A DNA stretch of 64,000 bases, from positions 335,797-399,796 of IMG/VR virus record IMGVR_UViG_3300036770_003657; one strand, given 5' to 3'. This document shows, in pieces, positions 17,822-46,351 of this stretch. Within the stretch, counting starts at the first letter, position 1; every line of letters starts with the position of its first letter. The notes beneath the pieces were generated by a model. That model worked only from the letters and a program-made list of their open reading frames with translations. It was not told the origin of the DNA and did no database searches. Made by a program: the position numbers and the translations under genes.

Positions 17822-18706
17822 TTACCATGTAGTAGTATTTTTACCACTATCTCCTATTATTTGTCCAATACTATATGCAGCAGGAGCAGCTACAAATTCC
17901 ACTGGATTATTATGATGTTGTGTTACCCAATCTCTTATTCTAGTCCAGTCTTGAAATAAGCTTTGTGTAGTTGTATATGTTCTTTTAGTACCTTTATTAG
18001 TCGTTAATTCGTAGCTATATGTAATTGTGTAAGTTAAATCATTGGTCCAATAATATATTTCAGATTCAGGTCTTGTTGGACATTCAGTTATATCATACTC
18101 TGTTAAAATTCTAGGAGTAGTGTGTGGAGCAGAGTCAGAAGTAGTAGCACTTGATAAATGATCAACATATTTCATTGTTCCAGTCGGTATCATATCATAA
18201 AATCCACTGGCTTCACAATTATCTGCATTGATAGTCAATGTAATATGATCTAAAAATCTTGGGCGTCTTGGCATACTAATATCAGTACATTGTACTTCAA
18301 TAATTTCTTCATCTTCTTCATCATTATACCATAAGTAAGGTATAGGATCATAATCTGGATTTGGTACTTCTCCTGCATAATTGCCATCACCATCATATGC
18401 AGCTATAGTTTGGGGTAAAAAATGTGCTGGGTTAGGGATATGTGGTGGTTTTACTATTGATGCTCCAACTGTAAAACTAAAATTAGCATAAATTTCTACA
18501 CTGCCTCCAGAACCAGACCAATTAAAAGTATTTCTATAGTCATAGCTATAACTAACACTGTCTCCAGGTTTATCATTACTAGAAGGAGTAAATGTTTCTG
18601 GAGCACGCCACTCTGCTCCATTTTTAAATGGAAAAATAAATGGAAAATCTGTATTAGGTGGAGGAGGTGACTGTATCAGTGTATAGCCATCTATTATCAC
18701 ACTCAT
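17822..18706 (-). CDS. Hypothetical protein, probably baseplate/tail-associated
   Basis: 294 aa, coupled between the giant fibre and PAAR genes. Confidence 0.6.
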   Translation of the reverse strand: MSVIIDGYTLIQSPPPPNTDFPFIFPFKNGAEWRAPETFTPSSNDKPGDSVSYSYDYRNTFNWSGSGGSVEIYANFSFTVGASIVKPPHIPNPAHFLPQTIAAYDGDGNYAGEVPNPDYDPIPYLWYNDEEDEEIIEVQCTDISMPRRPRFLDHITLTINADNCEASGFYDMIPTGTMKYVDHLSSATTSDSAPHTTPRILTEYDITECPTRPESEIYYWTNDLTYTITYSYELTTNKGTKRTYTTTQSLFQDWTRIRDWVTQHHNNPVEFVAAPAAYSIGQIIGDSGKNTTTW

Positions 18707-21700
18707 TATAGTCTCCCTACAACTACTTCAATAACGCCTTCATCACCATCAAAATCTTCTAGTGCTTTACCTATTACCATACCCATACGTGGATCATCAT
18801 GTGCCTTGGCATAGCCATCTCCTGCACTGACCAACATATCACCTTTGCTTATCTTACCACGTACCTTAACTGGTACACGACCTTGTAGAGCAACTGCTAC
18901 AACGTGTTCACCTTCTAGTTCACTGTTCATTAAGTGTGCTGGGTTCTTACTAACTACACCTACTACTTTACGTGTTAAATCTGTACCTATGGTAACTTCA
19001 TTTACTCCACCAATCATTAGAACTGTGCCTTCTTCGTATTTTGCATCAGCAAGATAGTTCTCTGCCAAGTCAGCATATTTTGCTTGTGTAGCTACACCAT
19101 TGAATACAGAAGCATATAATGTATCAGTAGCAGGATTACAGTATATACCACCTGTTCCATAAACACTGTTACCGCTACCCCATAGCATTTGGTATGTAGA
19201 ATTACTATCGTTATTGTAATTGATAGTAACTTGCGAGGAAGTGGAAGCTGAAGCAGCATTACCTGTACAGCTTCCTGAACTTCCACTTACATTACCTGTT
19301 ACATTTCCTGTTAGATTACCAGAAAATGTGGCAGTTATAGTACCTGCACTGAAATTACCACTTGCATCACGTTTGACTAATGTACTTGCTGTATTTGCTG
19401 TAGCACTTGATACATTAAAGGTAGTTCCACTTAATGAAAGATCGGTTCCGGCACTGTAAGTAGTATTAGTATCTGGATTAGCTGGCATAGTCAATGTTAT
19501 TGAACTAGTTCCTGTGATGTGTCCGTTTGCATCATAAGTAACACTAGGTATTTTAAATGTACCACCAAATGCCAGTGTTCTTGTTGCTCCTCCATCACTT
19601 ATTGTACCAGCTGTTACTGAATTACTATGATTAAACGTAGTTCCACTTAGAGATAATCCAGTTCCAGCACTATAGGTAGTATTAGTATCTGGATTAGCTG
19701 GCATAGTCAATGTAATAGTATTGGTACCAGTAATATGTCCATATGCATCATAAGTAACACTAGGTATTTTAAATGTACCACCAAATGCCAGTGTTCTTGT
19801 TGCTCCACCATCACTTACTGTACCAGCTGTTATTGCACTATTGGCATGCCCTAAAGTTATTGTACCTGCTGTACTTTGATTAGCAGTAAACGTACCGGTA
19901 CCAGTTAATCCATTATTACCCTGTACAGTAAGTGTACCATTGCCTATACTGACTGTAGCTGTAGCTACACTAGCAGCAGTAACGTGACCATAACCATCAA
20001 ACTCAAAACTAATATCTTGTATAAATGTATTATCACTGTTATCACTGCTTAAATTACCTACACTGCTAGTGTCAGCATGACTTAGTGTAATAGTACCTGC
20101 TGTACTTTGATTAGCTGTAAATGTACCACTACCAGTTAATCCATTGTTACCCTGTACAGTAAGTGTACCGTTACCTATACTAACTGTGGCAGTAGCTACA
20201 CTAGCACTAGTAACGTGTCCAAATCCATCAAAATCAAAACTAATATCTTGTATAAATGTATTACCACTATTATCACTGCTTAAATTACCTACACTGCTAG
20301 TGTCAGCATGAGAAATATTAACAGTGACACCTTCACCACTTCCTGAAATAGTTAACCCACTAGTTCCAGTTTGACTACCTGGAGTTCCAGAACTTACTGC
20401 TGCTATATAATTACCAGTAGTATCAGTTCCTAGTGCTACACTATCAATTCCAATAGTTGTAGTCATGCTAACATTGTTAGATCCATCAAATGTCACACTA
20501 CCACTAACATCACCAGTTAAGGCAATAGTTCTGGCTGTAGCTAATTTTGTAGCAGTGTCAGCGTTCCCACTCAATCCACCACTTACACTACCTTGGAAAG
20601 TTCCTGCGATAACAGTTGACCCTGCTCCAAATGTCCATTTATCAACACTTTCATCCCATAATAAACTTACGTTGGTATCAGTACCTCTTTCTATTTCTAT
20701 ACCAGCATTTTGTGTTGGTTCAGCAGTTTCGTTACTATTCAGTACAATGATATTATCAGCTAACTCAATAGTTTCAGTATTGATTGTAGTAGTTGTGCCA
20801 CTTACTGTTAGATTACCACCAATAACAGTATTACCTGTAACGTTAAAGTTTCCACCAACATTAAGGTTTTCAGTTACCGCTACTCCACCAGTAACAATTA
20901 AAGTACCAGTTGACGTATTTGTACTGGATATATTACCTGCCATTTCAATACGGCCAGTCCCAAATACCTTAAACTTATCTGCACTGGCTAAATTAGTAGG
21001 TCCACCATAAGTAAAGGCTATGTAGCTGGTAGTATCAGTTACCGTAATAACCTTATCTATAGCCCAATGACTCTTTAGGTTATTATCCTTTACAAACGCA
21101 CTACCATTCCAATTTAAATTAGTTAACCAACTAAATCTATTGGTTGTTCCTACACTAGTAAATCTAGTTTTAAAATCTGTAGTATAAGCACTTTGTAAAG
21201 TAACACTAGTTAATGCCCCACTGCCATTGTAGGTAATATTAAAAGTTGGATCATCTATAGTAGGTGCTGCTTTATAAATCACCTGTCCACCAGTAGTAAA
21301 GTTAATAGTGCTACCATCAGTGGCTTGGAACGTCATGGTGTTACTTGCTGTTAATGTCTTAGCATTAGCCAATGTAAATGTACCTGTGCTGTTGGAAATA
21401 GTCATTCCATTTACAGTCTTATTGGTCAATGCTTCTGTACCTGCCAATGTAGCCAATGTACCTGTCGTTGGGAAGGTTACACTGGTTGCAGCAGTCATAG
21501 TAAATGTGCTGGCATATGCTCCTGATGTAGTTAAGTTACCTCCTAAGGTTATAGTCTTTGTACCATTGTTAACACCAGTGCCACCATATGTTGGGCTAAT
21601 TATGCTGGCTTGCCAAGTACCTGTACTAATAGTGCCTACTCCAGTTAGACTACTATTGACAACACCTGAACCTAATGTTGTACTACTCAATACATCTACA

Positions 21701-24700
21701 CCGTTGATCTTATAAGTTTTACCTGTGGCAAGATCCATGTTCTCACTACTGGTCCAGCTACTTGTAGATTGTATCCAACGGAAAAGTTTATCAGTGGTGC
21801 CTTTTATTGTTATACCACCTCCAGCTGCTGTAGCATCAGTAATTCCACCAGTGTTGAAAACTACAGCCACTCCATTTGGACTAATTTGATCTGGTGGTGT
21901 ATCAGCTGTAAACGTAAACAAATTAGCACCATTAATAGCAGTTACTCTTGGATTGGCACCTAATTGACCACCACTTACTCTACTCAATGTCATCCCAGGA
22001 ATCATTCCTGCTGTACTAGCAGTAATTGTAGTTGTCAGTGCTCCAATAGCGGTAAAGTTAATATTGCCACTACGACTTGATATTGGTTCTACTGAGCCTA
22101 ATTCAATATTGTTATCATCCATTTGGATGTCATATGCATTAAGAGTGCTGGCAGCACCGGTAATATTAACATTACCATTTACAGTGAGCCCGTTTAAGGT
22201 TATGCTGTCGGTCCAAACTGGACGTTTATTAGCACTGCCTAAACTCACTGGCTGAACATTTAACACAGAATTAGTATCACCTATAGGTAATTTTTGTATT
22301 ATGGTGGAGCCACTGGCATATAACATGTCCCCGACAGTATAACTGGCAATATTAGTACCACCCTTATCTACAGGAACTTGACCAATAATATTACTTGGTG
22401 TTAGATAATATAATCCATCTTGTCCATCTAGAGTACCTGCATCTACTACACCTGATTTAATACCAACAGCACCCTGACTACCTCCGGTACCTACTTCAAA
22501 TTGACTCTTATTAAATGACGCTACACCTAAGTTTGTATGGCCAGGGATATTTGCATTTTCCTGTCCTCCACTGACTACATCCACACCAACAGTAACTTCA
22601 TTGTAGAATTCTTGTATGCCTCCAGGTCCTGGATCAAAGAATGGGCCAGTTATAGTAATAGCACTATCAACACTTGGTTTTTTGATCTTTTGTACGGCCT
22701 TGGCCCATGTACTATCGCCTCTTAAAAAGGTGTTACTATTAGCAGTACCAATAGCTAATCTAGTAGTGCTCATTATACCACTAACAATATTAGTTGTATC
22801 TATATTACTGGCGCTTAGACTACTCCAGTTTTCTGCCAGTATACTAGCATTATCTACAACACCAATAATTTTAATGCTTTGCTTTCTAAAACTAGCAACC
22901 CCAGTACCAGTATTAGTAAAATTAAATGCACCAATAGTAAGACCTAATGTACTGGCCACTGCATCAGCTCTACCTTCATGTATAGTAAAGGTGTTAGTAG
23001 TCACACTTCCTACAAAGAATATGCTGTTAGTTAGTATACCGTATGGTGGATCTGCTGCAATAATTTTTACTGCATCACCAGTAGCAAATCCATGATCTGG
23101 AATATAAACTGTATCTTTGGTGATATCTAATATAGATAATGTTAAAGTTTGATTACCTGCACCAGAGTTAACAATTGTTAACTTGGTTGATAGACTATAA
23201 GTTGTATAAAGTTCAATAGTATCAGCATCAATACTTTTCACATAATAGATGCTATTATTAACAATCCCACCTAATGGTGTTCCAAATCCTGCATTATATT
23301 GTACAGCATCACCATCATCAAATGGGTGACCAACGATAGTTATACGACTTAGCGCAGTATTAACATTGCCTCCTGAACCTGTACTAGCAGCATTAAATGT
23401 AGCAACTACAGTACTGTCTAATTGATCAGTTGTTTTCGTTACAACATTTGCATCTTCTGTAAATTCTGGGGCTATACTATTTGCATTAAACTTCAATGCG
23501 CCAACAATATCAACATACACACGATTTTGTATTTGGCTAACCTTAACACTAAATGCGCTTCCACCTGTACGTCCATTCAAATTTGCATCATTTGCACTGA
23601 GTCTATCTACTGTGGTATACCCACTTCCACCGGCAGTTAGTACTACATTAGTAACGACTCCACCACTTAGGAACAGGTCTGCCCTAGCTCCAGTTCCTGA
23701 TCCTCCTGTTAAAGGCACATCAGTATAAAATCCTGAAGGTGGTTGAGTATATCCACTACCCCCTGCTAATCCTGTTACTGGATCATTGCTATTATCTAGT
23801 GCATTAGCAACACCTTCTACAATATATTCTATAGTGCCTTGTGCTTGACTATTACTACCTGTTACACTAGTTACTCCTGTAAAATCATAAGTTTGAGTTG
23901 GGTCTAATAGTAATATCTGTTTACTATCTAATTCACTTAAAATGTAATTGGTATTTTGATCTGGAATAATACCTCCTACTAGGGTAGGTGTTAATCCAGT
24001 GCTTGCACCATTAAGAGTTATTTCTCCTACAGTATCAAATGTATCGTCAAAAAATTCACCTAAACTTCCAATGACTACAGTAGTAGAATTATTGCCACCG
24101 ACTACTCGACCAGTTGCTCCAGAACTGGCTTGTAGGATTAAGTCACCATCAACGGCCACTAATACACCATCTAGAGTCAACGATACTCCACTATATGTTT
24201 CAATGGCTAAATCACCATTTAAAATACTAGTAGGAGGTACTGTATTGACCAAGTTTAGTCTACTACGATATCCATTACTTCTATATACTAAGAAGTTTCT
24301 TAATGGTGGTATCTGATCAGCACTTAATTTTCCTAGTGCATTTAACTGAGGGATACCACCTGGTTGAGTAGTAGTTGTAAGTTCTTTGTCAATAAAGTCT
24401 CCTAGTCTATTTTCTAAGAAACTTCTAACAGCCAACTGTGTGCTTAATCTATTATGACTTGGTCCGCCTACTTCATTATCACCGAGATCAATATCAGCAC
24501 TAAATTCTTCAATAGTAATATTACCAACAGCCAACTTCAACGCATCTAAAGCAGCAATACTAACAGTGTTTGTAAATTGTACATTACCTGTTTTGTTTTC
24601 AGCTTTAATAAAATCACCAACTTTAAAGTCACCAAGTTCATTGGTTCCTGAACTATATACACGCCCTGGTAATTCACTGACTTGTTCATATTCAACTCTA

Positions 24701-27700
24701 GTACGTCCACCGTTTTGTGGTAATGCATTATAGTCAGTTCCGCTACCTGCATATTCCCAAGTGTGGCTACTGCTGTTAACAATACTAGGTCTATGCAACC
24801 ATATCTGTTTACTTGGCAGTGTTTCTAAATTGATTAGTTCATTACCACTGGTAGTGGCCAATATCTTAAATGTTGCCGTGTATAAGTTATCTACGTTTTG
24901 GACATCAGTTACATCAATATTTAAAATAGCAGGGCTACCATTGTCATATTGAATAACAGTATCTAAGGTAAAGTTATTTCTAATAAAATTTTCCCCAACT
25001 AATACTTTTTCTACGCTAACAACTAGGCTTCGTGTTGTTGGATCCCAACTGAATATATATGCTCTATTTGGTGTTATACCACTGGTTGTACCTTCGATTA
25101 CTCTACCTGGAATAAATGTATAACTTTGTCCTATAGGAGGAGGTTCTACTTGTAATTTTTGATATACAACGTGACTTTCAGTGAGATCATCAATAAAAAA
25201 TTCTTTAATATTCTTTAATAAAAGATGTTCACCTGTTGGTAGTGGAGCAGTAAATTTTGCCTTTATTTCAAAACCATCGTCCAAATATAATTCAAATTGA
25301 TTGGCATTTAAAATTTTAATTACATAAGTTTGTTCGTCATAAAGACCTTTAATTAAACTATTTCCATTAGCTCTATAAACTATTTTCTCTGTATTTTGAA
25401 AACCGTGAGCAGGAATTGTTATGACATTAGTATTGACATTTATAACTGGTTCGATTTGTGCAGGACTAGTTCCTGGAATGGTGACATTATTACTTGGTGT
25501 AAAAGGTACCTGATCATCCACCTGTTTGTAACTATTAGTTACATCTCCAATATTACTATAGTCAACTATTTCTGGAACATTAATGATACTGTCAATAATA
25601 TCTATAATGATATCAAATAAATCACCAACTCTACTCTGTGCATCAGGATGTACTAGCGCAATAGTTAACGATTTTAGTTCTTGGAAGGCAGCAATATTTT
25701 GAGTTCTTTGATTTATTAGAGCTGCCACAGTGCTTGTAGAATAGGCTACACCAGCTTCAACGCTTTTACTATTGCCTCCTGTTAGTACATCATATGCTAC
25801 TGCCTCTAATACTAGTAAAGTATCTCTTCTACAAGTATCTTGATCATATGTAAATCCTGTATAATATGGCGCTGTGTTGGCAGTTACTTGGCTGTCAATC
25901 CAAGTTATTAGTGCATCTCTTAATTCTTCTTTGTTATTTAAAATTGTACTATATGTTTCTCTATATACAGGATTTCTAAATCTTATTACATAGTGCTGTA
26001 CTGGTAGGTCCCCAAAACCAATAGCAGTAATAGTTTGTTGTGCTCCTGCGCTGCCTGTAGCAACTACAATACCTTTATTAAAATCAAAAGCATTAGGACT
26101 ATAACCATTGGCCCTTAAAGCAAATTGACCAAAGTTAGTAGCACTATTGGTAATACTTAGATATCCACCGCTTTGACAATAACTACCATTTAAACAGAAG
26201 ATCTGGAAACAGCTAACAATCTGTGCATATGCATCATTAATAACACGATATCCTGTACCCCCAAAGCTCAACATAGTAAATGCATTACCTACCATTGATT
26301 TACCTTGTTGCGGAGCAGGTCCTTCTACTGGGTTCTCTGCTTCAATTTGATTAACAGGTATATTTGGTGTACGTACTTTACTACCATCAACCAATACACC
26401 ATTACCACCTAAGAAGCTGATTATACTACAGTTCTGCACATATGGGCTAATACTAATAACTGGTTTATTATTTGGTAGTCTAGTATATCCTACACGACTA
26501 CATTCTGGATCAGCTGGATCATCAAACGCCACTGCATAGTCAAATGTAAAGCTAGGTATATTGTTTACATCCAGTGCATCTCTGAAAGTTATCTCTGTAA
26601 AATAACAGCCATTACGTACACGTAGCATATCCTTACCAGCATTAAGTGGTCTAATATTACAGGCACGTAGACCAGCTCCTACTACACTAACGTTATCTGG
26701 AATAATAATTGGATTATCTTCGTAATAGTCTCCACTAGCAACTGCTATAACAATACGCTTTTCGTTTGGAATGTAGTCAGCAACAAAAGCTACAGTTTCG
26801 GTTTGAATGATTTCCTTGTCTGCTAGTAATGCTGCTCTAGCATCACTCTTAGTTGGACTTATTGGTGTAGCATTAGGATATTCTGTATTTGGTGCTTGAC
26901 TGGGTCCTTGATCTATAATTGTTACTACATATCCTAAAAGTTCCTGAGCTTTATCTATGGCAGCACTGCTGGCTGGATCTCCTACACCAAATGCGTTGAG
27001 ATCATTTTCTAATACTAAATTGATTATTTCTTCTTTCAAATATCTATATGTTATTGCACTGGCTTGTCTATCATTGAATATAGGTAATCCCATTCCATAA
27101 CTAAAATATTTTTTAGCAGCATCTATAGTTTGACTATTGCCACCATACATTAGGTCATAGGCTAAACTGTAGACTAGATATCTTATATCACGAGCGCACT
27201 TTTCTTCATTATAAGTAAAGTTATTAAACTCAACAGTAATAAATTGACTTACTCCAGTAATAATAGCAGCTTTGTTTTCCTGTATCAGTCCAAAATTAAG
27301 TTGCGTTGTTGGATTAGCCGAACTAATGTCTGGAAATACTTTATTGTTTAAAGAACTAGTATTTTCATCTGTAATAACATCAATGATTATATCAACTAAA
27401 TCTTGGCATTTGATAGTTTGTTCAGAATTAGTAGCAGGATATAATGAAGTATCTTGTGTAAGAAGATTGGTACTAGATTTAGTAATTGGTACTGCGTTAA
27501 CAATATCACCAATAATCTCTTGTAGTCTTGTATATGCTGCTAGTGTTTGTGCCTTCTCACCAGCACCTAATTGTAGCACGGCTCCAAATATATAAGCTTC
27601 TGCATTAGAATAGGTTGCACTATTACCGCCATATAATACATCGTATGTTATAGCATCAACTATAAATTCTACATCACGTCTACATTTATCTATTATACTT

Positions 27701-30700
27701 CCTGGGGTGCTGGCATATGATGGATAAGTATCAATTAACCAAGCAATGACTTCCTCTCTAATAAATGCTTTATTTGTTTGTAATTGATTTTTAGCATTTA
27801 AAACTGCAACTTCTGCATTACTGGGATCAGTGAAAGACACTGCATCAATAGCAGGATAACCTTCCTCAAGAAAATCAATTATTTCCTGTACTTTATTTTT
27901 ATAGCTTAAGAAGAATGTGCCACTGGTTACATATTGTTCACTTTCTCTGTATAATTGTTTTAATGCTGCTGCTGTCTGTATCTTTTGATTATAGAAAGTG
28001 CCTAATTGATTCTGTCTATCATAACTATATTGATTTTGTCTAGTATTTAAGTTAGTTCCCAGTACTATGTCATATATAGCTCCTTCAATGACTAGACTCA
28101 TATCTCTTTCACATTTGGTTACTGTGGGGCCAGTATAACTAAATCCTAAAAATGTATTATTGACATAGTTAGTACCTTGATCAACTATATATTCAATATT
28201 ATCTAATAATAAGTCTTTGGCATTGACATAACCTACTGGCAATCCTGCAGGAGTTGGCATAGTAATTGCAGGTAATATTGTAGGTATTTTAGCAATACCA
28301 TCTCCAGTACCAGGTACAGCGGCTACAAAGGTATCTCCTACTGTATAAGATTCACCAGTAGTACCAGCTACAGCGTTCCAATCAGTGCTTCCTAATACTT
28401 CAATTTCATACGTAATACCCGCAACTAAATCTGTTACAGGATATGATACATCAACTACGTTGATTAAGTCACCAGCATATGTATTCGCCAGTATGTTTGT
28501 AATACTTTGAATACTGGCAGCTACTTCAGTTGCCTCAGTTCCACTTTGAGTATCTACAGCCTTTAACAATAGATAGTTTAAAGCTCTAATGGTAATATCT
28601 TTTTGACTAATTAGTACTGCACTGGCTGTGGCATTGCTATAGGTAAATCCTGCCTTTACGCTTTGCCAATTACTGCCATAGATAAGATCATATCCAATAG
28701 CATCAATAATTAAACCAACATCTCTAAAACAAGTTTGATCATTAAATTCATTTCTTTGTTTATAGACTAAATTACTGGCTATTTGTAGGGCACGTTTAAT
28801 AGTTTTTACTGGTTTATTAATGCCATCAAAATTATCATCACCATTAGTTGCACTAACAGCTACTTGTCCACCACCAAATAAATCAGCACTAACAAATTCT
28901 AATTTATTTCCATCTCGATTAAGTGATAATATTGATCCATCTACACCTAAAACTCTTGGAAATGTTAATGTATAACTGTTTACAAACTCTTCCGGTGTTG
29001 TTCCTGCTGGGGCACGTAATCCTACATAGTTATTGCCGTTTGAAGTTAACTCTTTTAATCTAATCTCGCCTTGATTATTAACATTAAGACCGTCAGTGTT
29101 GATTAAGGTAGATCTTATTGTAGATGGAGTTGTCTCACCTATCCTAGTATTATCAATAGTTCCACTGTTGATATCTACGTTGGCTAATGTGCTAGTGCCA
29201 TCTACAGTAAGATCTTCAGCAATATACACATTGTTGTTTACTGTAATATTATTTACTGTAATATCATCTAATAACAAACTGCCTAAAGTTGCTTGGCCAG
29301 TAACATCGAGGTCACCACCAATATTAACATTACCAGTAGTATCAAGTGTATTGGCATCAATGTTATCAGCATTTATATCATTACTTGTTATTGTGCCTGT
29401 GAAATTACTAGTACCAGTAACATCTAGATTGCCACCTACATGTAAGTTTTCGCTTATTCCTACACCACCTGTTACTACGACGGTTCCAGTAGTTGTATCG
29501 GTAGAACCTATATTAGCCTTTGCATATACCTGTCCATCTAAATTAGTCTCTAAATTAACTGTTAAGTTTTCAATAGTAGCATTATCAAGTACATCTAATA
29601 TATCAGTTTCTATATTAGTGGCATCAACGTCACCAGTCAAATCACCTGTAACATCACCTGTAACATTACCAGTATACATAGCATCGGTACCTGTAGTACC
29701 TCTATCCAATATTACAGTTTCAGTGACTACACCACCAGTGTCCTTATAAAGAATAATATCTGTGTATGCTTTTGCATCAAACCCATTAGTACCATTTTCA
29801 AAAACTTTTACACTTACATTTTCAGCAAATATATCACCAGTGCTTGGTCCAATAATAGTACCTTCAAACTCACCAATAAATCTTTCAGTGGCTTCGATTA
29901 TTGTTCCTGTTATGGCTCTAGGTTCTTCTGCTCCAATTACAGTGGCATCAATATTCCCACCATTTATATCAACTTGATCTAACCTACTAAGCCCATAACT
30001 GGTTATATTACCACTTACCTTACCGATAAACTCAGCTTCTACATAACCTGAATCTAAGGGTGCTCCACCTGTACCATTCTCCAATACTTTTGTAATACCA
30101 TCTTCAGCATAGATATCACCAGCAAAATTTCCGCTTATGCTACCTTCAACATTACCATAGAATACAGGTGGTTGATAACTTAATACATTTGTTGGGCCAC
30201 CTGTTCCATTATCTAATATTTTAGTAGTGCCATCAGCAGCATATAAATCACCAACTACATTACCTTCTAGTTTACCAACAAATTTTACACTGGCAGTAAT
30301 TACAGTTCCTGTGATTAAGGTAGGACCGCTATTACCAATTATAGTGCTGTTAATAAATCCACCGTTTAATAACAAACTACTTATTTGACTGGTTCCAGTA
30401 GTTTGAGTTATTCGACCTAACAATTCACCTGTAAAAGTTGCATCTGTTCCATTGGTGCCATTCTCTAAAACTTTTACTCCACTATCGCTATAAATATCAC
30501 CAAAAACATCACCAAACAAGTTACCAGTAATATTGCCTTGAATGTTAGCTAGAATTTCTTCTTCTACATTTATACTATTGGCTACTATATCGCCAGCTAC
30601 ATTAAGATCGCCTCCAATACCTACTCCACCAGATACAATCAATGTTCCTGTATATGGGTCTAAACTAGGCGTATTATCAGAAAGTATTGTTTTAACATTA

Positions 30701-31035
30701 ACAGTAATTATTTCTGGATCAGCTACTAGGGTTTCTACAGTATTGTTTGTCATGACAATACTATTGATTCTATCTTCAGGGCCAATGCTTAGAAAAGTAT
30801 AGGGATTGAATTCGGAAACAACTTCACCTAAAGTAACAATATAGGATAAGTTGTTCCACCTAGTAAAACCATCACCTATTTTAAAGTTTTTTTGATCTAG
30901 GTCAACCCCAATCTCGCCCTGTGCAAGAATCGGGTTAATATCTATCCAGTTTTGTCTTGAATCTCTTCTTAATTGAATCCTTTTGGCCATTATTGTCTCC
31001 AACTGTAGTTTGGAGATAGCCTCCAAACCGCCCAT
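18706..31035 (-). CDS. Giant tail fibre / receptor-binding protein (4,109 aa; alternative start at 30990)
   Basis: Mtd_N-like RIQLRRD...W...NPILAQGEIG...KIGDG; G/T/N-rich beta repeats; pectin-lyase-like beta-helix; C-terminal ADLAENY...VALQGRVP fibre tail; TAAATA at 31041-31046. Confidence 0.9.
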   Translation of the reverse strand: MGGLEAISKLQLETIMAKRIQLRRDSRQNWIDINPILAQGEIGVDLDQKNFKIGDGFTRWNNLSYIVTLGEVVSEFNPYTFLSIGPEDRINSIVMTNNTVETLVADPEIITVNVKTILSDNTPSLDPYTGTLIVSGGVGIGGDLNVAGDIVANSINVEEEILANIQGNITGNLFGDVFGDIYSDSGVKVLENGTNGTDATFTGELLGRITQTTGTSQISSLLLNGGFINSTIIGNSGPTLITGTVITASVKFVGKLEGNVVGDLYAADGTTKILDNGTGGPTNVLSYQPPVFYGNVEGSISGNFAGDIYAEDGITKVLENGTGGAPLDSGYVEAEFIGKVSGNITSYGLSRLDQVDINGGNIDATVIGAEEPRAITGTIIEATERFIGEFEGTIIGPSTGDIFAENVSVKVFENGTNGFDAKAYTDIILYKDTGGVVTETVILDRGTTGTDAMYTGNVTGDVTGDLTGDVDATNIETDILDVLDNATIENLTVNLETNLDGQVYAKANIGSTDTTTGTVVVTGGVGISENLHVGGNLDVTGTSNFTGTITSNDINADNIDANTLDTTGNVNIGGDLDVTGQATLGSLLLDDITVNNITVNNNVYIAEDLTVDGTSTLANVDINSGTIDNTRIGETTPSTIRSTLINTDGLNVNNQGEIRLKELTSNGNNYVGLRAPAGTTPEEFVNSYTLTFPRVLGVDGSILSLNRDGNKLEFVSADLFGGGQVAVSATNGDDNFDGINKPVKTIKRALQIASNLVYKQRNEFNDQTCFRDVGLIIDAIGYDLIYGSNWQSVKAGFTYSNATASAVLISQKDITIRALNYLLLKAVDTQSGTEATEVAASIQSITNILANTYAGDLINVVDVSYPVTDLVAGITYEIEVLGSTDWNAVAGTTGESYTVGDTFVAAVPGTGDGIAKIPTILPAITMPTPAGLPVGYVNAKDLLLDNIEYIVDQGTNYVNNTFLGFSYTGPTVTKCERDMSLVIEGAIYDIVLGTNLNTRQNQYSYDRQNQLGTFYNQKIQTAAALKQLYRESEQYVTSGTFFLSYKNKVQEIIDFLEEGYPAIDAVSFTDPSNAEVAVLNAKNQLQTNKAFIREEVIAWLIDTYPSYASTPGSIIDKCRRDVEFIVDAITYDVLYGGNSATYSNAEAYIFGAVLQLGAGEKAQTLAAYTRLQEIIGDIVNAVPITKSSTNLLTQDTSLYPATNSEQTIKCQDLVDIIIDVITDENTSSLNNKVFPDISSANPTTQLNFGLIQENKAAIITGVSQFITVEFNNFTYNEEKCARDIRYLVYSLAYDLMYGGNSQTIDAAKKYFSYGMGLPIFNDRQASAITYRYLKEEIINLVLENDLNAFGVGDPASSAAIDKAQELLGYVVTIIDQGPSQAPNTEYPNATPISPTKSDARAALLADKEIIQTETVAFVADYIPNEKRIVIAVASGDYYEDNPIIIPDNVSVVGAGLRACNIRPLNAGKDMLRVRNGCYFTEITFRDALDVNNIPSFTFDYAVAFDDPADPECSRVGYTRLPNNKPVISISPYVQNCSIISFLGGNGVLVDGSKVRTPNIPVNQIEAENPVEGPAPQQGKSMVGNAFTMLSFGGTGYRVINDAYAQIVSCFQIFCLNGSYCQSGGYLSITNSATNFGQFALRANGYSPNAFDFNKGIVVATGSAGAQQTITAIGFGDLPVQHYVIRFRNPVYRETYSTILNNKEELRDALITWIDSQVTANTAPYYTGFTYDQDTCRRDTLLVLEAVAYDVLTGGNSKSVEAGVAYSTSTVAALINQRTQNIAAFQELKSLTIALVHPDAQSRVGDLFDIIIDIIDSIINVPEIVDYSNIGDVTNSYKQVDDQVPFTPSNNVTIPGTSPAQIEPVINVNTNVITIPAHGFQNTEKIVYRANGNSLIKGLYDEQTYVIKILNANQFELYLDDGFEIKAKFTAPLPTGEHLLLKNIKEFFIDDLTESHVVYQKLQVEPPPIGQSYTFIPGRVIEGTTSGITPNRAYIFSWDPTTRSLVVSVEKVLVGENFIRNNFTLDTVIQYDNGSPAILNIDVTDVQNVDNLYTATFKILATTSGNELINLETLPSKQIWLHRPSIVNSSSHTWEYAGSGTDYNALPQNGGRTRVEYEQVSELPGRVYSSGTNELGDFKVGDFIKAENKTGNVQFTNTVSIAALDALKLAVGNITIEEFSADIDLGDNEVGGPSHNRLSTQLAVRSFLENRLGDFIDKELTTTTQPGGIPQLNALGKLSADQIPPLRNFLVYRSNGYRSRLNLVNTVPPTSILNGDLAIETYSGVSLTLDGVLVAVDGDLILQASSGATGRVVGGNNSTTVVIGSLGEFFDDTFDTVGEITLNGASTGLTPTLVGGIIPDQNTNYILSELDSKQILLLDPTQTYDFTGVTSVTGSNSQAQGTIEYIVEGVANALDNSNDPVTGLAGGSGYTQPPSGFYTDVPLTGGSGTGARADLFLSGGVVTNVVLTAGGSGYTTVDRLSANDANLNGRTGGSAFSVKVSQIQNRVYVDIVGALKFNANSIAPEFTEDANVVTKTTDQLDSTVVATFNAASTGSGGNVNTALSRITIVGHPFDDGDAVQYNAGFGTPLGGIVNNSIYYVKSIDADTIELYTTYSLSTKLTIVNSGAGNQTLTLSILDITKDTVYIPDHGFATGDAVKIIAADPPYGILTNSIFFVGSVTTNTFTIHEGRADAVASTLGLTIGAFNFTNTGTGVASFRKQSIKIIGVVDNASILAENWSSLSASNIDTTNIVSGIMSTTRLAIGTANSNTFLRGDSTWAKAVQKIKKPSVDSAITITGPFFDPGPGGIQEFYNEVTVGVDVVSGGQENANIPGHTNLGVASFNKSQFEVGTGGSQGAVGIKSGVVDAGTLDGQDGLYYLTPSNIIGQVPVDKGGTNIASYTVGDMLYASGSTIIQKLPIGDTNSVLNVQPVSLGSANKRPVWTDSITLNGLTVNGNVNITGAASTLNAYDIQMDDNNIELGSVEPISSRSGNINFTAIGALTTTITASTAGMIPGMTLSRVSGGQLGANPRVTAINGANLFTFTADTPPDQISPNGVAVVFNTGGITDATAAGGGITIKGTTDKLFRWIQSTSSWTSSENMDLATGKTYKINGVDVLSSTTLGSGVVNSSLTGVGTISTGTWQASIISPTYGGTGVNNGTKTITLGGNLTTSGAYASTFTMTAATSVTFPTTGTLATLAGTEALTNKTVNGMTISNSTGTFTLANAKTLTASNTMTFQATDGSTINFTTGGQVIYKAAPTIDDPTFNITYNGSGALTSVTLQSAYTTDFKTRFTSVGTTNRFSWLTNLNWNGSAFVKDNNLKSHWAIDKVITVTDTTSYIAFTYGGPTNLASADKFKVFGTGRIEMAGNISSTNTSTGTLIVTGGVAVTENLNVGGNFNVTGNTVIGGNLTVSGTTTTINTETIELADNIIVLNSNETAEPTQNAGIEIERGTDTNVSLLWDESVDKWTFGAGSTVIAGTFQGSVSGGLSGNADTATKLATARTIALTGDVSGSVTFDGSNNVSMTTTIGIDSVALGTDTTGNYIAAVSSGTPGSQTGTSGLTISGSGEGVTVNISHADTSSVGNLSSDNSGNTFIQDISFDFDGFGHVTSASVATATVSIGNGTLTVQGNNGLTGSGTFTANQSTAGTITLSHADTSSVGNLSSDNSDNTFIQDISFEFDGYGHVTAASVATATVSIGNGTLTVQGNNGLTGTGTFTANQSTAGTITLGHANSAITAGTVSDGGATRTLAFGGTFKIPSVTYDAYGHITGTNTITLTMPANPDTNTTYSAGTGLSLSGTTFNHSNSVTAGTISDGGATRTLAFGGTFKIPSVTYDANGHITGTSSITLTMPANPDTNTTYSAGTDLSLSGTTFNVSSATANTASTLVKRDASGNFSAGTITATFSGNLTGNVTGNVSGSSGSCTGNAASASTSSQVTINYNNDSNSTYQMLWGSGNSVYGTGGIYCNPATDTLYASVFNGVATQAKYADLAENYLADAKYEEGTVLMIGGVNEVTIGTDLTRKVVGVVSKNPAHLMNSELEGEHVVAVALQGRVPVKVRGKISKGDMLVSAGDGYAKAHDDPRMGMVIGKALEDFDGDEGVIEVVVGRL
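19420..20313 (-). repeat. Two in-frame tandem duplications in the fibre gene (2x231 nt and 2x216 nt)
   Basis: cactgctagt at 20061 and 20292 (231 apart); atctggattagctggcatagtcaatgt at 19471 and 19687 (216 apart). Confidence 0.9.
25580..28780 (-). repeat. Five phycobiliprotein-like helical repeats within the fibre
   Basis: Cys codons of the C-x-R-D motifs at 28729, 28111, 27682, 27196 and 25831; each followed by I/L..A/S..YD...G[GST]N. Confidence 0.75.
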
Positions 31036-35076: not shown

Positions 35077-36816
35077 TTAAGTCAAAACCTTATATGTATA
35101 GGTCAATGTGCCTTCTTCAAAAGGTTGTTGATCAACACTAAGTGATTGATGTTGGTATGTCAATACAATTTCCTTTTGGTTCTGTATTGAATTTATCTGT
35201 TCTACAGCCCTAAAGATTAATTTTTCATCCTCAGGAGTAATATTTCCAGTAGCGTTAGTAGTTAATCCATACCCTATATATTCATAATCATCGTATAAAT
35301 TAATAATAGGAAGCGTCAAAGTGTTAGCTCTAAAATCTACAATTACTGTAAGAGTTCCTTTTCTTATTCTTCTTGATTTTTCATATATTGCAGGACTACC
35401 TGATGTGGTGTCAAAAGTTTTACTTTGATACAAATAATCTATTTCTATACTCATAGATTCTGGACCAATACCAGTGGTATTGCTCAAAGGAATAGGAAAT
35501 CTTACAAAATTAACAGGATTAGTAGAATAGGTAATCTTTTTTGTTTGGGTAATAAAGTTTTGATTTAATCCATAGCCAGTAAATTCACTAACATATGGTC
35601 TAGTACTTAGACTGTTGGCTCCGTATTTTGATAATTCTTTATGTCTTAAACTGCTATAATCTAAATTAATATTTCCTGGTACGTCAAATTCAATTTGTCC
35701 GTAAGCAGCATTTTGTATTCCACCATATATATTTCCCACACTTAGAAGATTATTGCTAGAACACATATTACTATATCCTTGTCTAATCTTCACAGCCTGT
35801 TTTTCAATATTGTCAAAGAAGCATGATTTTATTAAATTATGTCTAGGACCTTCATTTGAATTTGCAGATCCTAAAACAACACCTTGACTTAGCGTGATAA
35901 ATCGACTTTCTGATATTGAATTTTTATTGATTGGTCTTGAAGCATAAAACCCAATTTTAAAATTTTTAAATGTTACATTATTTATAGAGCATAAATTAGT
36001 ATAGGTAAAAGGTGATAGATCATTTACGTTTCCATTTCTAGGTTCATCAACTCGAAAAGCTATACTATCTATAGCATCTGGAACTACTGCACTTGTTACT
36101 AACGGCCCAATCAGTTCTAGATTACTAAATTCACATTTGGTTACACCGTAAAGATCAAATATTACTGATGGAGTATCAAGATACGATTGAGTTATTGGGT
36201 TTGGTCTAACAATTTCAATAGTTAAATTTGAAATACTTAAATTTCTACATTGATTTACTATCTCAATAGCATTGTTATCATCATGTATACTTTCAAATAC
36301 ATTTCCTGAACCTATGTATTTTAATATAGTATTTCCTTTTCCTGCACCTTGAATTCTAGTAAAGCTTGGTAATTGTACTGTACTATCAAATATAAAAATA
36401 CCTGGACCAATATCTATAACATTTTTACTATCATTTGATGTACCTATGTATAATTTTTCCATTAAAGCATTTAATACATCAGTATTTCTTGATGCATAAC
36501 TTAGGTTATCTCCTTCTAATAATCCAAAGTCATTGGCACTTACTCTATCTTCTAGTCTATCAGTAAAACTTCTAAAGATTCCATTATTTTTATAGGTATA
36601 TCTTCCTAGGCTAAAGATATCACTATTCTCTGTTAAAATTTCAACATTTTCTAATTGACTAGCACTTCCAATAATGGAAGATCCTATATATAACTGTTTG
36701 GTATCTATACACCAAGCGAACTCACCGTTGCTTAACTTGATAGGAAGATCACTACTAGGGCTAGCATCTTTAATATCTCTACGTATTTGTATTTTACTTA
36801 TTTGAACTACGGCCAT
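35077..36816 (-). CDS. Virion structural protein with a beta-helix domain
   Basis: MAVVQISKIQIRR...GEFAWCIDTKQLYIG; RLEDRVSANDFG; TAAATA at 36836-36841. Confidence 0.7.
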   Translation of the reverse strand: MAVVQISKIQIRRDIKDASPSSDLPIKLSNGEFAWCIDTKQLYIGSSIIGSASQLENVEILTENSDIFSLGRYTYKNNGIFRSFTDRLEDRVSANDFGLLEGDNLSYASRNTDVLNALMEKLYIGTSNDSKNVIDIGPGIFIFDSTVQLPSFTRIQGAGKGNTILKYIGSGNVFESIHDDNNAIEIVNQCRNLSISNLTIEIVRPNPITQSYLDTPSVIFDLYGVTKCEFSNLELIGPLVTSAVVPDAIDSIAFRVDEPRNGNVNDLSPFTYTNLCSINNVTFKNFKIGFYASRPINKNSISESRFITLSQGVVLGSANSNEGPRHNLIKSCFFDNIEKQAVKIRQGYSNMCSSNNLLSVGNIYGGIQNAAYGQIEFDVPGNINLDYSSLRHKELSKYGANSLSTRPYVSEFTGYGLNQNFITQTKKITYSTNPVNFVRFPIPLSNTTGIGPESMSIEIDYLYQSKTFDTTSGSPAIYEKSRRIRKGTLTVIVDFRANTLTLPIINLYDDYEYIGYGLTTNATGNITPEDEKLIFRAVEQINSIQNQKEIVLTYQHQSLSVDQQPFEEGTLTYTYKVLT

Positions 36817-37588: not shown

Positions 37589-37912
37589 TCAACGTCTTCG
37601 GTTAAGTGCGCTCTTTGCCATACTTTTTGTAAGATTGCCTTTTCCAGGATCACCACCTGACTGTTGTGGTTCTTCACTGGCTCTTGTCTTAAGACGTACA
37701 CCTTGTGGGTCAAAGCTACAAATTTCAGCAAAGCTTGGATTGGCTTCAAAGCGTGGACCAAATTTGCTAGGGCTGTCTATACGTTGCCCTAGCACATTTT
37801 GTGTTATATCTCCAAAAGCGGCCCAGTTAATAACTTCTGGGTTGTCTGCACTATCAGCAGAGTTACGCTTGGCTACTAGTAAATCAAATAACTTATCTTG
37901 GTTTTCAGTTAC
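37589..37912 (-). CDS. 107-codon C-terminal extension of the upstream gene, probably reached by -1 frameshift
   Basis: Open -1 frame begins at the A9 run, has two TAG stops just upstream and no ATG/GTG/TTG for its first 39 codons. Confidence 0.65.
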   Translation of the reverse strand, partial: VTENQDKLFDLLVAKRNSADSADNPEVINWAAFGDITQNVLGQRIDSPSKFGPRFEANPSFAEICSFDPQGVRLKTRASEEPQQSGGDPGKGNLTKSMAKSALNRRR

Positions 37913-38853
37913 TTTTTTTTTGTAAGTATGGCAGCAAGTCTACGGCTATAAGCAGCAGTTTCTCTCATAGCACGACCTGCTGGTTCCGCTGCCCCTGCTG
38001 CACCAAGTTCATCTTCCATACCTGCTGCTGCTTCTGGAGCACCTACTTCTGGAGCACCCATACCACCCATACCCATGCCTGCGCCACCTGGAGCTTCTGT
38101 GCCTGTTAATACTGCTACTGCCTGTGCTAGTGCTTGACGATTTTTCTCTAAGGCCAAATATATTTCATCTAGAGCAGGACGAACTGTTTGTTCAAAACTG
38201 CTACTAATATCGGTGCCCATCTCATCTCTTATAGAGTCTAATAAGTCTAACATGGCTTCGGACTTCATGCTTGCTACATCCTCTAGCCAGCCTGTGATAC
38301 GATCTGTCATGTCCTTAGCGGCCATGATTAACTCTGCCTTTTCTTCTTCGCCTTCTGTTAACATAAGGTCACGTACTACACCTTTAGCACTGGTCTCATC
38401 TAGGTCGTAACGAATGATTAGTTCACTAATGATTTCCTCGCCAGCATCACGTTCCATCATAAGACGTTGACGAGCATTGGTAGTCCATTGTTGTGGTAGT
38501 TTATGACTGCGTAGTCTACGCTGTGCCATATGATATTCTTTTAAGTTCTTTGCCTTGCGCTCTTTCTTTGCCTTCTTGTCTTTATCTTCTTCGCCTTTCA
38601 TTTCACGCTCAGCAATTTCTTGATTAATTACATCAAGCATTCTTTGATTCTTTTGGTATCTGTGATCACCTAATACACTGTCATAACTGTTGCTACTTTC
38701 AAATTGGCTTTGACTAGTACGTAGTTTATTACGAGCATCATGTAGTTGCTCCATTGTAAACTTTTCTAAGACTAGTTTATATCCAAACTGTTTACCTAGG
38801 TTTTCGTTTAATTTACGACTTGTAATGGGTTTTTGAAGATCATTGATATTCAT
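37909..38853 (-). CDS. Acidic helical protein, possibly prohead core / scaffold-like
   Basis: 314 aa; several L/I-x-E sites; Gly/Ala/Met-rich tail; ends ACA AAA AAA AAG TAA; TAAATA upstream. Confidence 0.6.
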   Translation of the reverse strand: MNINDLQKPITSRKLNENLGKQFGYKLVLEKFTMEQLHDARNKLRTSQSQFESSNSYDSVLGDHRYQKNQRMLDVINQEIAEREMKGEEDKDKKAKKERKAKNLKEYHMAQRRLRSHKLPQQWTTNARQRLMMERDAGEEIISELIIRYDLDETSAKGVVRDLMLTEGEEEKAELIMAAKDMTDRITGWLEDVASMKSEAMLDLLDSIRDEMGTDISSSFEQTVRPALDEIYLALEKNRQALAQAVAVLTGTEAPGGAGMGMGGMGAPEVGAPEAAAGMEDELGAAGAAEPAGRAMRETAAYSRRLAAILTKKK

Positions 38854-38878
38854 ACCGAGTTCCTAATATTTAAGATAT

Positions 38879-39346
38879 TTATCTAAATGAGTGATTAAAC
38901 GCCTGCGTTATTTCGTTGCGATACCACTGGCTTCTGTCTCTGGATTGCTCATATCTCCATAAGAACACATCCCTTTTAACTTCATCTTTGGTCTTGCCAA
39001 ATAATTCTTTAAAATGTACGCTGTCTGTATAACTACTCCAATAACGTTGATCTAGGTCTTTGGTTCTACTTAGTTCCATTATTCTATTATGTTTGTGCTG
39101 TTTAGCCGCTATTAATGCGCTGCTTTTTAAGTAGAAGGTGTATATGCTGTTCTTATAGCGTTTACCGTGTTGTATAAGATCCCATTGGCCATTACGATTT
39201 TTTCTTATTACATAGTTATAATAGCCTACACTGCCATCACTTAGTACCACTGTGGGCATAATGTTTTTAACTTCACCAAGTAATCGTTCAAACCTTTTAA
39301 CTGCTTTATCTATTGACATTGGCCACAACCTTTGGATTAACCTCAC
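38879..39346 (-). CDS. Hypothetical protein
   Basis: 155-aa ORF in a late operon; start uncertain. Confidence 0.65.
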   Translation of the reverse strand: MRLIQRLWPMSIDKAVKRFERLLGEVKNIMPTVVLSDGSVGYYNYVIRKNRNGQWDLIQHGKRYKNSIYTFYLKSSALIAAKQHKHNRIMELSRTKDLDQRYWSSYTDSVHFKELFGKTKDEVKRDVFLWRYEQSRDRSQWYRNEITQAFNHSFR

Positions 39347-44135: not shown

Positions 44136-44763
44136 ATTCGTAACTTACAGTGTTAGTATCACCCAATGCCCACTTAGGATTAGTTTCAACCCTATACACT
44201 TTGGTACATACCTTAAAGTCTGGAAACTTAAGTTCTTTTGGATTGCTGGCAGCGTCTAAAAATATACAACGATTGTTAGGCTGTGCCGCATATTGTCCGT
44301 TATCCAATTCTATAAAATTATAACTCTTGTGATCTTCTGGCCATTCACTATATGTAGTATCGATTACATTAGGATCAGCGTGTGCTTGATCCACTGTGAA
44401 CATATATGATCCACTATAGAATTGTTTATCCTTAGCATAGAACTTACAACTTAGATTTTTTAAAAAACTTTTTTGTATAACAGTCATATCGTAACTAAAG
44501 CAGTCCCATATCTGTAAAGTGTCTAATTCAAGTTGTGCGCCTAAGTTGTCTGTTCTACTTACAAATGCATTGATGGGCAACTTGTCATACAGTGCTCCAT
44601 AATTAGGCAAGTAAGCTTCTATCCTAAATGCCTGTCCTCTTATACTTTTAAGACTTACCCATATACAAGGCTCATAATCTCCTTGACCCTGTTCAAAATC
44701 ATATAAGAATTCACGTTTGATATAGCAGTGTATTGGAGGTATGTTGGCAACTAGAAAACTCAT
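44134..44763 (-). CDS. Conserved phage hypothetical protein
   Basis: 209 aa; LYDKLPINAF, LQIWDCFSY and QPNNRC motifs. Confidence 0.75.
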   Translation of the reverse strand: MSFLVANIPPIHCYIKREFLYDFEQGQGDYEPCIWVSLKSIRGQAFRIEAYLPNYGALYDKLPINAFVSRTDNLGAQLELDTLQIWDCFSYDMTVIQKSFLKNLSCKFYAKDKQFYSGSYMFTVDQAHADPNVIDTTYSEWPEDHKSYNFIELDNGQYAAQPNNRCIFLDAASNPKELKFPDFKVCTKVYRVETNPKWALGDTNTVSYE

Positions 44764-45461
44764 CTTAGTTTGGCCAAACCTAATAGCATTAGCATTTTAA
44801 GATATACATAGCCTATGTCTATTTCCCACCACTTTTCGCTGAGCTTGACACTGCTGGGCTTGTTATGGTGGTTGTTGTGGAGTTCCTCTCCTCCGATAAT
44901 GAATCCAAACGGTATAATATTTCTACTGCGATCAGAAGTTGAACTATTGCGATAGCCCCAATAATGCCCAATACCATTGATAACGCCCGCTGCCCAAAAT
45001 GGTATCCACGCCATCTGAATAAGCCAAATAAGAATACCCCAGCCATTAAAACATAAAGTGTTGATGATAAGAAGTGATAGTATGCCATGACAAGTATATT
45101 TACTATAAATGTTGCGTTCTACCCAATCATCAGGAGTACCTACTCCATATTGATCTATCATTGTACGATCTCTACTGGCTATATCATATAACCAAGCACC
45201 TTTAAACAGTACATTGCATATACCGTATACATGTGGACTATGTGGATCATTAAACTGATCTGTGAACCTATGATGCTTACGATGTATGGCTACCCATTCC
45301 TTAGTATTCATACCTGTTGTAAACCATAACCAAAAACGCATAAAGTGACTGACCACAGGATTGAACACTATACCCTTATGTGCCTGTCCACGATGTAAAA
45401 ATAATGTTACACATACTATAGTAATATGTGTAGCCGTTAAAAGATATAATAGTTCAATCAT
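44760..45461 (-). CDS. desA: Fatty acid (acyl-CoA delta-9-like) desaturase
   Basis: His boxes HRGQAH, HRKHH and HNNHH; TM segments. Confidence 0.92.
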   Translation of the reverse strand: MIELLYLLTATHITIVCVTLFLHRGQAHKGIVFNPVVSHFMRFWLWFTTGMNTKEWVAIHRKHHRFTDQFNDPHSPHVYGICNVLFKGAWLYDIASRDRTMIDQYGVGTPDDWVERNIYSKYTCHGILSLLIINTLCFNGWGILIWLIQMAWIPFWAAGVINGIGHYWGYRNSSTSDRSRNIIPFGFIIGGEELHNNHHNKPSSVKLSEKWWEIDIGYVYLKMLMLLGLAKLR

Positions 45462-46351
45462 AAGTGGTGTTTCACTCCAAGCTTGGCACCTAACATGTTC
45501 AAACTCATTAGGTATTTCTTTTGACTACTAGCAGCACGCTCTGGATCCCAACTGCTTTTATCTCCAGTATAGTTTTCATAATTGTCAGCATACTTAACCA
45601 TCATGGCTAATGGATTACCACTGTTAATTATAGCTTCTATATTTTGTCTATAGGTTAGGCTCTTGTTCTTTGTTAGTAGGCCCACTGCCTGTATGACCTG
45701 TGGTGTAAATTCTAACTTGGCCAGCTCATCTATACCAATATGTGTATCTTCTACCACATCGTGTAGGAAGGCTGTTTTCACTGCATCACTGTTAAACCTA
45801 CTGCCAAATATCTTCTTACCAGTTAAGGCCACTGCTCTAGGATGACGCCAATATGGTAGACTACCATATAGTTGATCACCGTGTGCTTGTTTAATAAACT
45901 TAAGAGTTTGTGCTACATTGAGTTCGTTAAGAGGTTCTATACTTTCAGCAAGTAGAGCAGCATGTTGAAATAGCTCTGGGTTCATCTTACCCCATAGTCT
46001 CATTATTACAGCAGCCTTAGCATTAGCTTCATTCTCATGTTCACTACCATCCTCTCCACTATCTGGAGTGAGCACTCCCATACTATCTTGTTTATAGTGG
46101 ACTAGTTCATGTGCTAGAGTTCTAAGTACATCCATAATGTGTCTATTTCCCACATTAAGCTCTATACGTCCACCCATATAGCCACCAAAGCTACGACGAC
46201 TACTGGCCAGTTTGGGATCACTATATAATTTAATCTTAGGTAGGTCGTTCAATTTTATGTGTTTACTAGCGAACCTTAAAAAGTTTTGAATAATAGACTT
46301 GGTTTCATCATCTACCCTAGGTGGTTTTTCTTTTAGCTCTTTAAAGTTCAT
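45458..46351 (-). CDS. Two-domain protein: HExxH zincin-like domain plus RelA/SpoT-type HD hydrolase
   Basis: TLAHELVHYKQ; PYWRHPRAVA...AFLHDVVEDT...VKYADNYEN. Confidence 0.75.
   Translation of the reverse strand: MNFKELKEKPPRVDDETKSIIQNFLRFASKHIKLNDLPKIKLYSDPKLASSRRSFGGYMGGRIELNVGNRHIMDVLRTLAHELVHYKQDSMGVLTPDSGEDGSEHENEANAKAAVIMRLWGKMNPELFQHAALLAESIEPLNELNVAQTLKFIKQAHGDQLYGSLPYWRHPRAVALTGKKIFGSRFNSDAVKTAFLHDVVEDTHIGIDELAKLEFTPQVIQAVGLLTKNKSLTYRQNIEAIINSGNPLAMMVKYADNYENYTGDKSSWDPERAASSQKKYLMSLNMLGAKLGVKHHL

Follow-up and report, generated by a model that had tools for sequence, protein, structure and literature searches.

Does the run of nine A's at the end of a late gene of a 400-kb freshwater phage bring a second, out-of-frame coding region into the same protein, or is it merely a sequencing error? 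The region analysed (the window) is a stretch of 64,000 nucleotides forming the last 64 kb of the single-contig IMG/VR virus record IMGVR_UViG_3300036770_003657. A first-pass annotation made from the sequence alone had proposed a programmed -1 frameshift on A_AAA_AAG at the stop of a late structural gene, giving products of 314 and about 421 aa, and had named transcriptional slippage on the A9 run and a homopolymer sequencing error as alternatives.

RESULTS

The A9 run and the offset reading frame

The observation made in the first-pass annotation is correct in every element. The gene encoding the 314-aa protein, here called X, ends CTT ACA AAA AAA AAG TAA on the minus strand. Translation of the three frames showed that the -1 frame reads L-stop-P-stop-TCCHTYKKKVTENQDK...ALNRRR-stop, being closed by TAG at 37948-37946 and TAG at 37942-37940 and then open from the run to the TGA at 37591-37589. 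This is 107 codons counted from GTA at 37912, and this extension is here called Y. The other two frames are full of stops. The first ATG, GTG or TTG in the extension frame is the GTG at 37795, codon 40, in agreement with the claim that there is no start in the first 39 codons. The features of the locus are as follows.

38876-38883, minus strand: GATAAATA, a T4-late-promoter-like motif (NATAAATA) overlapping the stop of the upstream 155-aa gene, 30 nt before the ATG; its promoter role is inferred from T4.
38861-38865, minus strand: TAGGA, a Shine-Dalgarno-like motif 8-12 nt before the ATG at 38853.
37909-38853, minus strand: gene X, the 314-aa zero-frame product.
37923-37909, minus strand: the codons ACA AAA AAA AAG TAA.
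37913-37921, minus strand: the A9 run, which holds the heptamer A_AAA_AAG (37918-37912, G at 37912) and is long enough for RNA polymerase slippage.
37909-37911, minus strand: the zero-frame stop TAA, directly after the slippery codon.
37589-37912, minus strand: extension Y in the -1 frame, 107 codons (VTENQDK...NRRR) plus TGA.
37851-37882, minus strand: the weak copy, in the window, of a clade-specific hairpin 30 nt after the G of AAG.

At 36.6% G+C about 0.069 of random codons are stops, so that 107 open codons would be expected by chance with a probability near 5e-4. The 399,796-bp genome holds only four A/T runs of 9 or more, and the other three lie in frame inside ORFs. The comparative data given below put the arrangement far beyond chance.

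The genome has a CheckV completeness of 100%, a T4-type Gp23 major capsid gene (E 1e-98) about 280 kb away and 27 tRNAs. Among the tRNAs of the phage itself, those of its unknown host aside, there is a tRNA-Lys(UUU) and no tRNA-Lys(CUU). The gene order on the minus strand is a 155-aa gene, X, Y, a PD-(D/E)XK exonuclease, a 579-aa fibre-like protein (Mtd_N/pectate-lyase-like), nrdA and nrdB, and a 4109-aa fibre-like protein.

Conservation of the run and of the extension

X has more than 1000 homologues, of which the best 120 are all 240-324 aa and nearly all end in KKK. From metagenomes and IMG/VR, 159 loci were fetched, of which 109 were distinct and 104 had a complete extension. They span 100% down to 40% protein identity and come from many samples. 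Of these 104, 81 have the pattern NCA AAA AAA AAG TAA, 102 have a run of at least 9 A's and 95 carry the extension in the -1 frame. The heptamer or a close variant (AAA, AAC) is present in all -1-register relatives, and the stop is TAA in almost all relatives and TAG in a few. Elsewhere in the same ORFs, Lys codons are 60% AAA and 40% AAG, and the codon preceding the run is four-fold degenerate yet almost always ends in A. This conservation is therefore at the nucleic acid level. It was set beforehand as a check that homologues should end in KKK-stop with the same offset ORF, and this was found.

The extension peptides align from their very first codon (V-x-E). They are 103-119 residues long and share conserved W, F/D and G positions and a C-terminal MAKRAAxK motif. 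Pairwise dN/dS is 0.15 overall and 0.29 for the first ~30 codons, indicating purifying selection from the slip site onward. No start codon is conserved, the first start-type codon falling anywhere from codon 2 to codon 96. An exhaustive HMMER scan of 1.84 billion protein representatives with Y found only short fragments, together with one 463-aa protein with Y at its N-terminus and one spurious TSP1-repeat hit of 1300 aa. No in-frame X-Y fusion was found.

These results exclude a sequencing or assembly error or a recent inactivating mutation. Homopolymers are error-prone, one relative (locus L010) has A8 next to A9 sisters, and Logan DNA contigs of two runs break at the A run, although such breaks could reflect heterogeneity or merely low complexity and are uninterpretable. 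However, the same out-of-frame arrangement appears in more than 100 independently assembled contigs from many samples and studies, no in-frame version was found in the searches above, and Y is under purifying selection. The out-of-frame arrangement itself is what selection maintains. Stop codon readthrough was also rejected since the extension is in the wrong frame.

Metatranscriptome-library contigs of a relative, compared at 80% likeness, cross the exonuclease start, Y, the run and the 3' part of X with no indel listed at the run. The dominant RNA form thus has the genomic length, although DNA may be present in such libraries and contigs drop minor variants, making this weak evidence against slippage by the polymerase.

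RNA structures after the slip site

Two different hairpins occur, each confined to part of the protein tree. In the clades at 40-50% identity a stem of about 11 bp (class I) starts mostly 4-7 nt after AAG, in a few cases 10-14 nt. In twelve diverse examples the MFE is -15 to -21 kcal/mol, z is -3.9 to -6.6 and none of 200 shuffles folds as well. RNAalifold on the MAFFT alignment of these distant clades predicted nothing because indels shift the register, and the named structure was counted instead. On the alignment, 76.8% of cells pair against 35-43% in slid controls, 74 cells have changes on both sides against 15-28 in the controls, and 9 of 11 pairs show compensatory change. The encoded peptides differ between subclades while complementarity is kept, so the selection is on the RNA. 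This is the dnaX-type layout.

In the clade at 59-100% identity, which contains the window, no nearby structure exists. Instead a 12-bp hairpin (class II) lies 30 nt after the G. It too is supported by covariation at synonymous third positions, with 93.8% of cells paired and three to four pairs switching between GC and AU. In the window itself this hairpin is degraded to 9 pairs with mismatches, and the 77 nt after the run fold no better than shuffles (z 0.13). Thirty nucleotides is too far for a classical stimulator. A structure is common but not obligatory for A_AAA_AAG. No relevant Rfam match was found at E up to 1 in five representative loci, including to any frameshift element.

A subclade in the opposite register

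A monophyletic subclade (support 100/99), sister to the subclade of the window, has A10 or A11 followed by the same GTAAC. There the zero frame reads KKKSNRSH-stop and the intact, conserved Y lies in the +1 register. The singleton L010, with A8, has the same register. A simple tandem -1 tRNA slip cannot serve this subclade. It could be served by loss of one A or gain of two during transcription, or by a +1/-2 movement of the ribosome on the long run.

The X and Y proteins

AlphaFold2 with a 40-row alignment predicts X as long helices (64-116, 169-212, 214-250), a disordered Gly/Ala/Pro linker (253-292) and a C-terminal helix ending in KKK, with mean pLDDT 73. Y is predicted as a compact alpha/beta domain (residues 5-80, pLDDT 80-92) followed by a disordered basic tail. 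Y matched no Pfam, PHROG or NCBIfam family and no PDB sequence. Foldseek against PDB and BFVD gave nothing significant, the best hits being winged-helix-like at E above 1, and Y is thus not called a winged helix. For X there was no PDB match and the Atlas neighbours are all viral hypotheticals.

Searches by blastn and tblastn of 50,697 phage records found no close relative of X, only a weak hit to Atu_ph07, and none of Y. X matches phrog_14154 'virion structural protein' at E 1.8e-12, a family built around Atu_ph07 gp044, which was also the tblastn hit. The homology covers the conserved helical core (TEGEEEKAELIMA...DSIRDEMG region). By hhalign X matches PA5oct gp247 at 96.2% probability (E 2.3e-9) and XaC1_379 at 95.9%. 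The PA5oct record marks gp247 as a virion protein and cites ESI-MS/MS, and the Atu_ph07 and XaC1 homologues are annotated as virion structural proteins.

The NATAAATA motif, the T4 late promoter consensus with a free first base, is conserved 31-36 nt upstream of the X start in all 85 distinct upstream regions while the flanks vary, and TAGGA/AGGA is conserved at its position in nearly all relatives. The heptamer ATAAATA is depleted genome-wide (90 copies), and half of the copies lie within 60 nt upstream of ORFs. The label 'late structural gene', a guess in the first-pass annotation, is therefore reasonable and indirectly supported, but rests on inference.

Distant relatives with two genes

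Synteny from the 131-aa gene through X, Y, the exonuclease and the fibre-like gene is conserved across the family. In three more distant metagenomic relatives (loci L161, L162 and L163) the X orthologue is 460-504 aa with a DUF3008 insert and ends RILAGS or RILSGR with no A run. This indicates that KKK is not a requirement of the protein. Y is there a separate gene whose ATG overlaps the X stop (ATGA) or follows it by one base, with AGGA upstream. Homology of Y is established for L161 and L163. The overlap is in the same -1 register as G-TAA in the window, suggesting that the frameshift arrangement arose from a translationally coupled pair by loss of the start codon and gain of the run. PA5oct (gp246/245 after gp247) and XaC1 (XaC1_380 after XaC1_379) also have small genes with their own starts between the X homologue and the exonuclease, and probably show the same two-gene arrangement, although comparison did not establish homology of these small genes to Y. 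The synteny in these two-gene phages is the same, with X followed by Y or a small gene, the PD-(D/E)XK exonuclease, a fibre-like protein and RNR. Across them Y or the small gene has its own ATG/GTG and Shine-Dalgarno sequence, and X lacks KKK and the A run and is longer (the DUF3008 insert) or shorter.

A second ORF with its own ribosome binding site and start, which would have counted against the frameshift, thus occurs only in much more distant relatives that also lack the A run. This shows an alternative arrangement and does not refute the inference. It does raise the possibility that Y is made in the window as a separate protein by termination-reinitiation at the X stop, with no fusion protein. 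This is very unlikely. In the A-run family there is no ATG, GTG or TTG at or near the junction, the -1 frame between the upstream TAGs and the run reads TCCHTYKKK, the first Y codon is GTA and conservation of Y begins exactly at the run. Reinitiation would also give no role to the A9G conserved at the nucleotide level or to the hairpin 6 nt downstream.

DISCUSSION

The interpretation in the first-pass annotation, a programmed frame change at the A9G run giving 314-aa and roughly 421-aa products, is supported. Recoding of some kind is very likely. The comparative analysis demonstrates the conservation of the signal, of the offset coding frame and of the hairpins, whereas the existence of the long form, its proportion, the share of each route to it and the virion or assembly role are inferred.

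The explanation favoured is programmed recoding at the 3' end of a late gene of a T4-like jumbo phage, with ribosomal -1 slippage as a major route being somewhat more likely than not. Most ribosomes would decode Thr-Lys-Lys-Lys and stop at UAA to give the helical protein X. A minority would change to the -1 register, read GUA (Val) and continue for 106 more codons to give a 421-aa protein comprising X plus the small predicted alpha/beta domain with its basic tail. The ancestral and main route would be re-pairing of tRNA-Lys(UUU) from AAA-AAG to AAA-AAA on A_AAA_AAG, stimulated in many relatives by the hairpin about 6 nt downstream. RNA polymerase slippage on the run, with one extra A in the mRNA, would add to this and may dominate in the clade of the window, where there is no nearby hairpin.

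Transcriptional slippage as the sole or main route, with the ribosome playing no special part at least in the clade of the window, is possible but less likely. In its favour, the heptamer needs only six A's and a G yet the run is 9 or more almost everywhere, and such runs are otherwise rare in this genome. Nine A/T is the length at which bacterial RNA polymerase slippage becomes efficient, as in Thermus dnaX (PMC5009743), although the polymerase of the unknown host may be a different case. The G is replaced by A in about seven lineages (runs of A10-A11) without loss of the arrangement, the +1-register subclade is easily served by loss of one A or gain of two, and the window and its clade lack a nearby hairpin. 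Polymerase slippage must therefore be considered a serious contributor. Against this, the strong covarying hairpins 4-7 nt after AAG in most of the distant clades point to the ribosome, since a structure not yet transcribed cannot act on the polymerase, and the terminal G is kept in 81 of 104 relatives. Both routes yield the identical 421-aa protein and they cannot be separated on the present evidence.

A more speculative and rather doubtful possibility is a dual-mode switch in which both kinds of slippage feed the long product and lineages retune the balance by changing the run length (A9 to A11, flipping the register) and by moving the hairpin. The hairpin 30 nt downstream would then act at one ribosome footprint distance, for example through queueing of a trailing ribosome on the A run, and the arrangement would have evolved from an ATGA-overlapped, coupled gene pair by loss of the start codon in the same register.

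The site may be compared with known systems. It shares its heptamer with the E. coli dnaX cassette (A_AAA_AAG, 6-nt spacer, stem-loop), the relatives at 40-50% identity have a stable stem-loop about 6 nt after it, and the stop directly after the shift site resembles the 'reversed' dnaX arrangement described in PMC5009743. Here, however, the shift would lengthen rather than truncate the product, no upstream Shine-Dalgarno-like stimulator was seen, the run is A9 and not A6, the window itself has no nearby hairpin and the protein is unrelated. With programmed transcriptional slippage on A9/T9 runs (Thermus thermophilus dnaX, IS elements, Shigella spa13/mxiE) it shares a homopolymer of nine and stops in two of the three registers, so that only one register yields the long product, and the register differs between related lineages (A9 in -1, A11 in +1). 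Many relatives carry a downstream hairpin, which has no known role in polymerase slippage, the known stimulatory hairpins lying upstream in the nascent RNA. With phage structural gene frameshifts that add a C-terminal part (lambda G/GT tail chaperone, T7 gene 10A/10B, Lactobacillus phage A2 major head protein) it shares a late phage gene, a shift near the 3' end and inferred short and long forms with a common N-terminal body, presumably in a fixed ratio. A capsid 10A/10B-type identity was rejected as X is not a major capsid protein, Gp23 being 280 kb away. A G/GT identity was rejected because X, at 314 aa, is not a tail chaperone by size, sequence or position, no Pfam, PHROG or NCBIfam match of that kind was found, and the neighbours are an exonuclease, a fibre-like protein and RNR. 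The slippery run with an adjacent stop and the clade-specific hairpins are particular to this site.

The site works like the dnaX and IS cassettes and the 3'-end frameshifts of phage structural genes, if the inference is correct, but belongs to none of those gene families. Literature searches, in a collection that was incomplete, found no description of it. In a large, globally distributed clade of uncultured freshwater jumbo phages, gene callers miss or truncate a 107-residue domain. The public protein sets hold only fragments of 48-137 aa that start at internal codons, and the 421-aa form is never predicted. The natural variation in register, run length and hairpin position makes the family a series that could separate ribosomal from polymerase slippage, since the same protein pair would be expressed in four ways: as two coupled genes, by A9G with a nearby hairpin, by A9G with a distant hairpin and by A10-A11 in the opposite register. 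For the biology of these phages, the finding points to a virion or assembly protein whose two forms are probably needed in a fixed ratio.

Hairpin downstream of the slip site, and run length

A 12-bp hairpin lies 30 nt downstream of the slip site, at window 37851-37882 on the minus strand, corresponding to columns 43-74 of the alignment (A5) in the related loci L001-L044, L082, L085 and L091. The hairpin is conserved through covariation at synonymous codon positions, with Leu/Val/Ala codons pairing with Ala/Asp/Ser codons. It is too far away for a classical frameshift stimulator. A monophyletic subclade, observed in loci L013, L014, L016, L017, L018, L021, L091 and L149 (e.g. L016:3946-3975), has A10-A11 in place of A9, and the extension lies in the +1 register. 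The zero-frame product of this subclade ends KKKSNRSH.

Logan DNA contigs from two independent metagenomes, runs X7 and X8, end or begin at the A run (window 37898-37921). This may reflect run-length heterogeneity in the reads, or only a break at low complexity. The only other A/T runs of 9 or more in the genome (record G000, contig C1) are at 286662-286671, 327522-327530 and 345115-345123, the last being window 9319-9327. These lie in frame inside long ORFs, where they encode KKK or KK, and while they are possible sites of incidental slippage, no offset ORF follows them. The whole record holds 27 tRNA genes, mostly clustered at 317-322 kb, and among them is a single tRNA-Lys with anticodon UUU and none with CUU.

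Upstream motif and distant relatives

A T4-late-promoter-like motif, NATAAATA, is conserved 31-36 nt before the start of the 314-aa gene (X) in the window, at 38876-38883, and in the upstream regions of all related loci. ATAAATA is depleted genome-wide, with 90 copies in 400 kb, and half of the copies lie within 60 nt upstream of ORFs.

Distant relatives (L161:1490-3339 and L163:1617-4392) encode the extension domain (Y) as a separate gene, whose ATG overlaps or abuts the stop of a longer X orthologue that carries a DUF3008 insert. In L163 the Y domain heads a 463-aa protein.

Other genes in the window

18706-31035, minus strand: a 4109-aa ORF.
35077-36816: its 579-aa neighbour.
44760-45461, minus strand: a fatty-acid desaturase gene.
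45458-46351: the gene next to the desaturase.

The 4109-aa ORF begins with a fibre-type N-terminus, judged Mtd_N-like by eye only, and contains many repeats. It is probably a giant tail fibre or adhesin. The 579-aa neighbour shows weak Mtd_N and pectate-lyase-like matches. The gene at 45458-46351 has an HD-like HDVVEDT motif by eye but gave no Pfam match. In the gene next to it the phage encodes a fatty-acid desaturase (PF00487, E 2.8e-12), which is probably an auxiliary metabolic gene.
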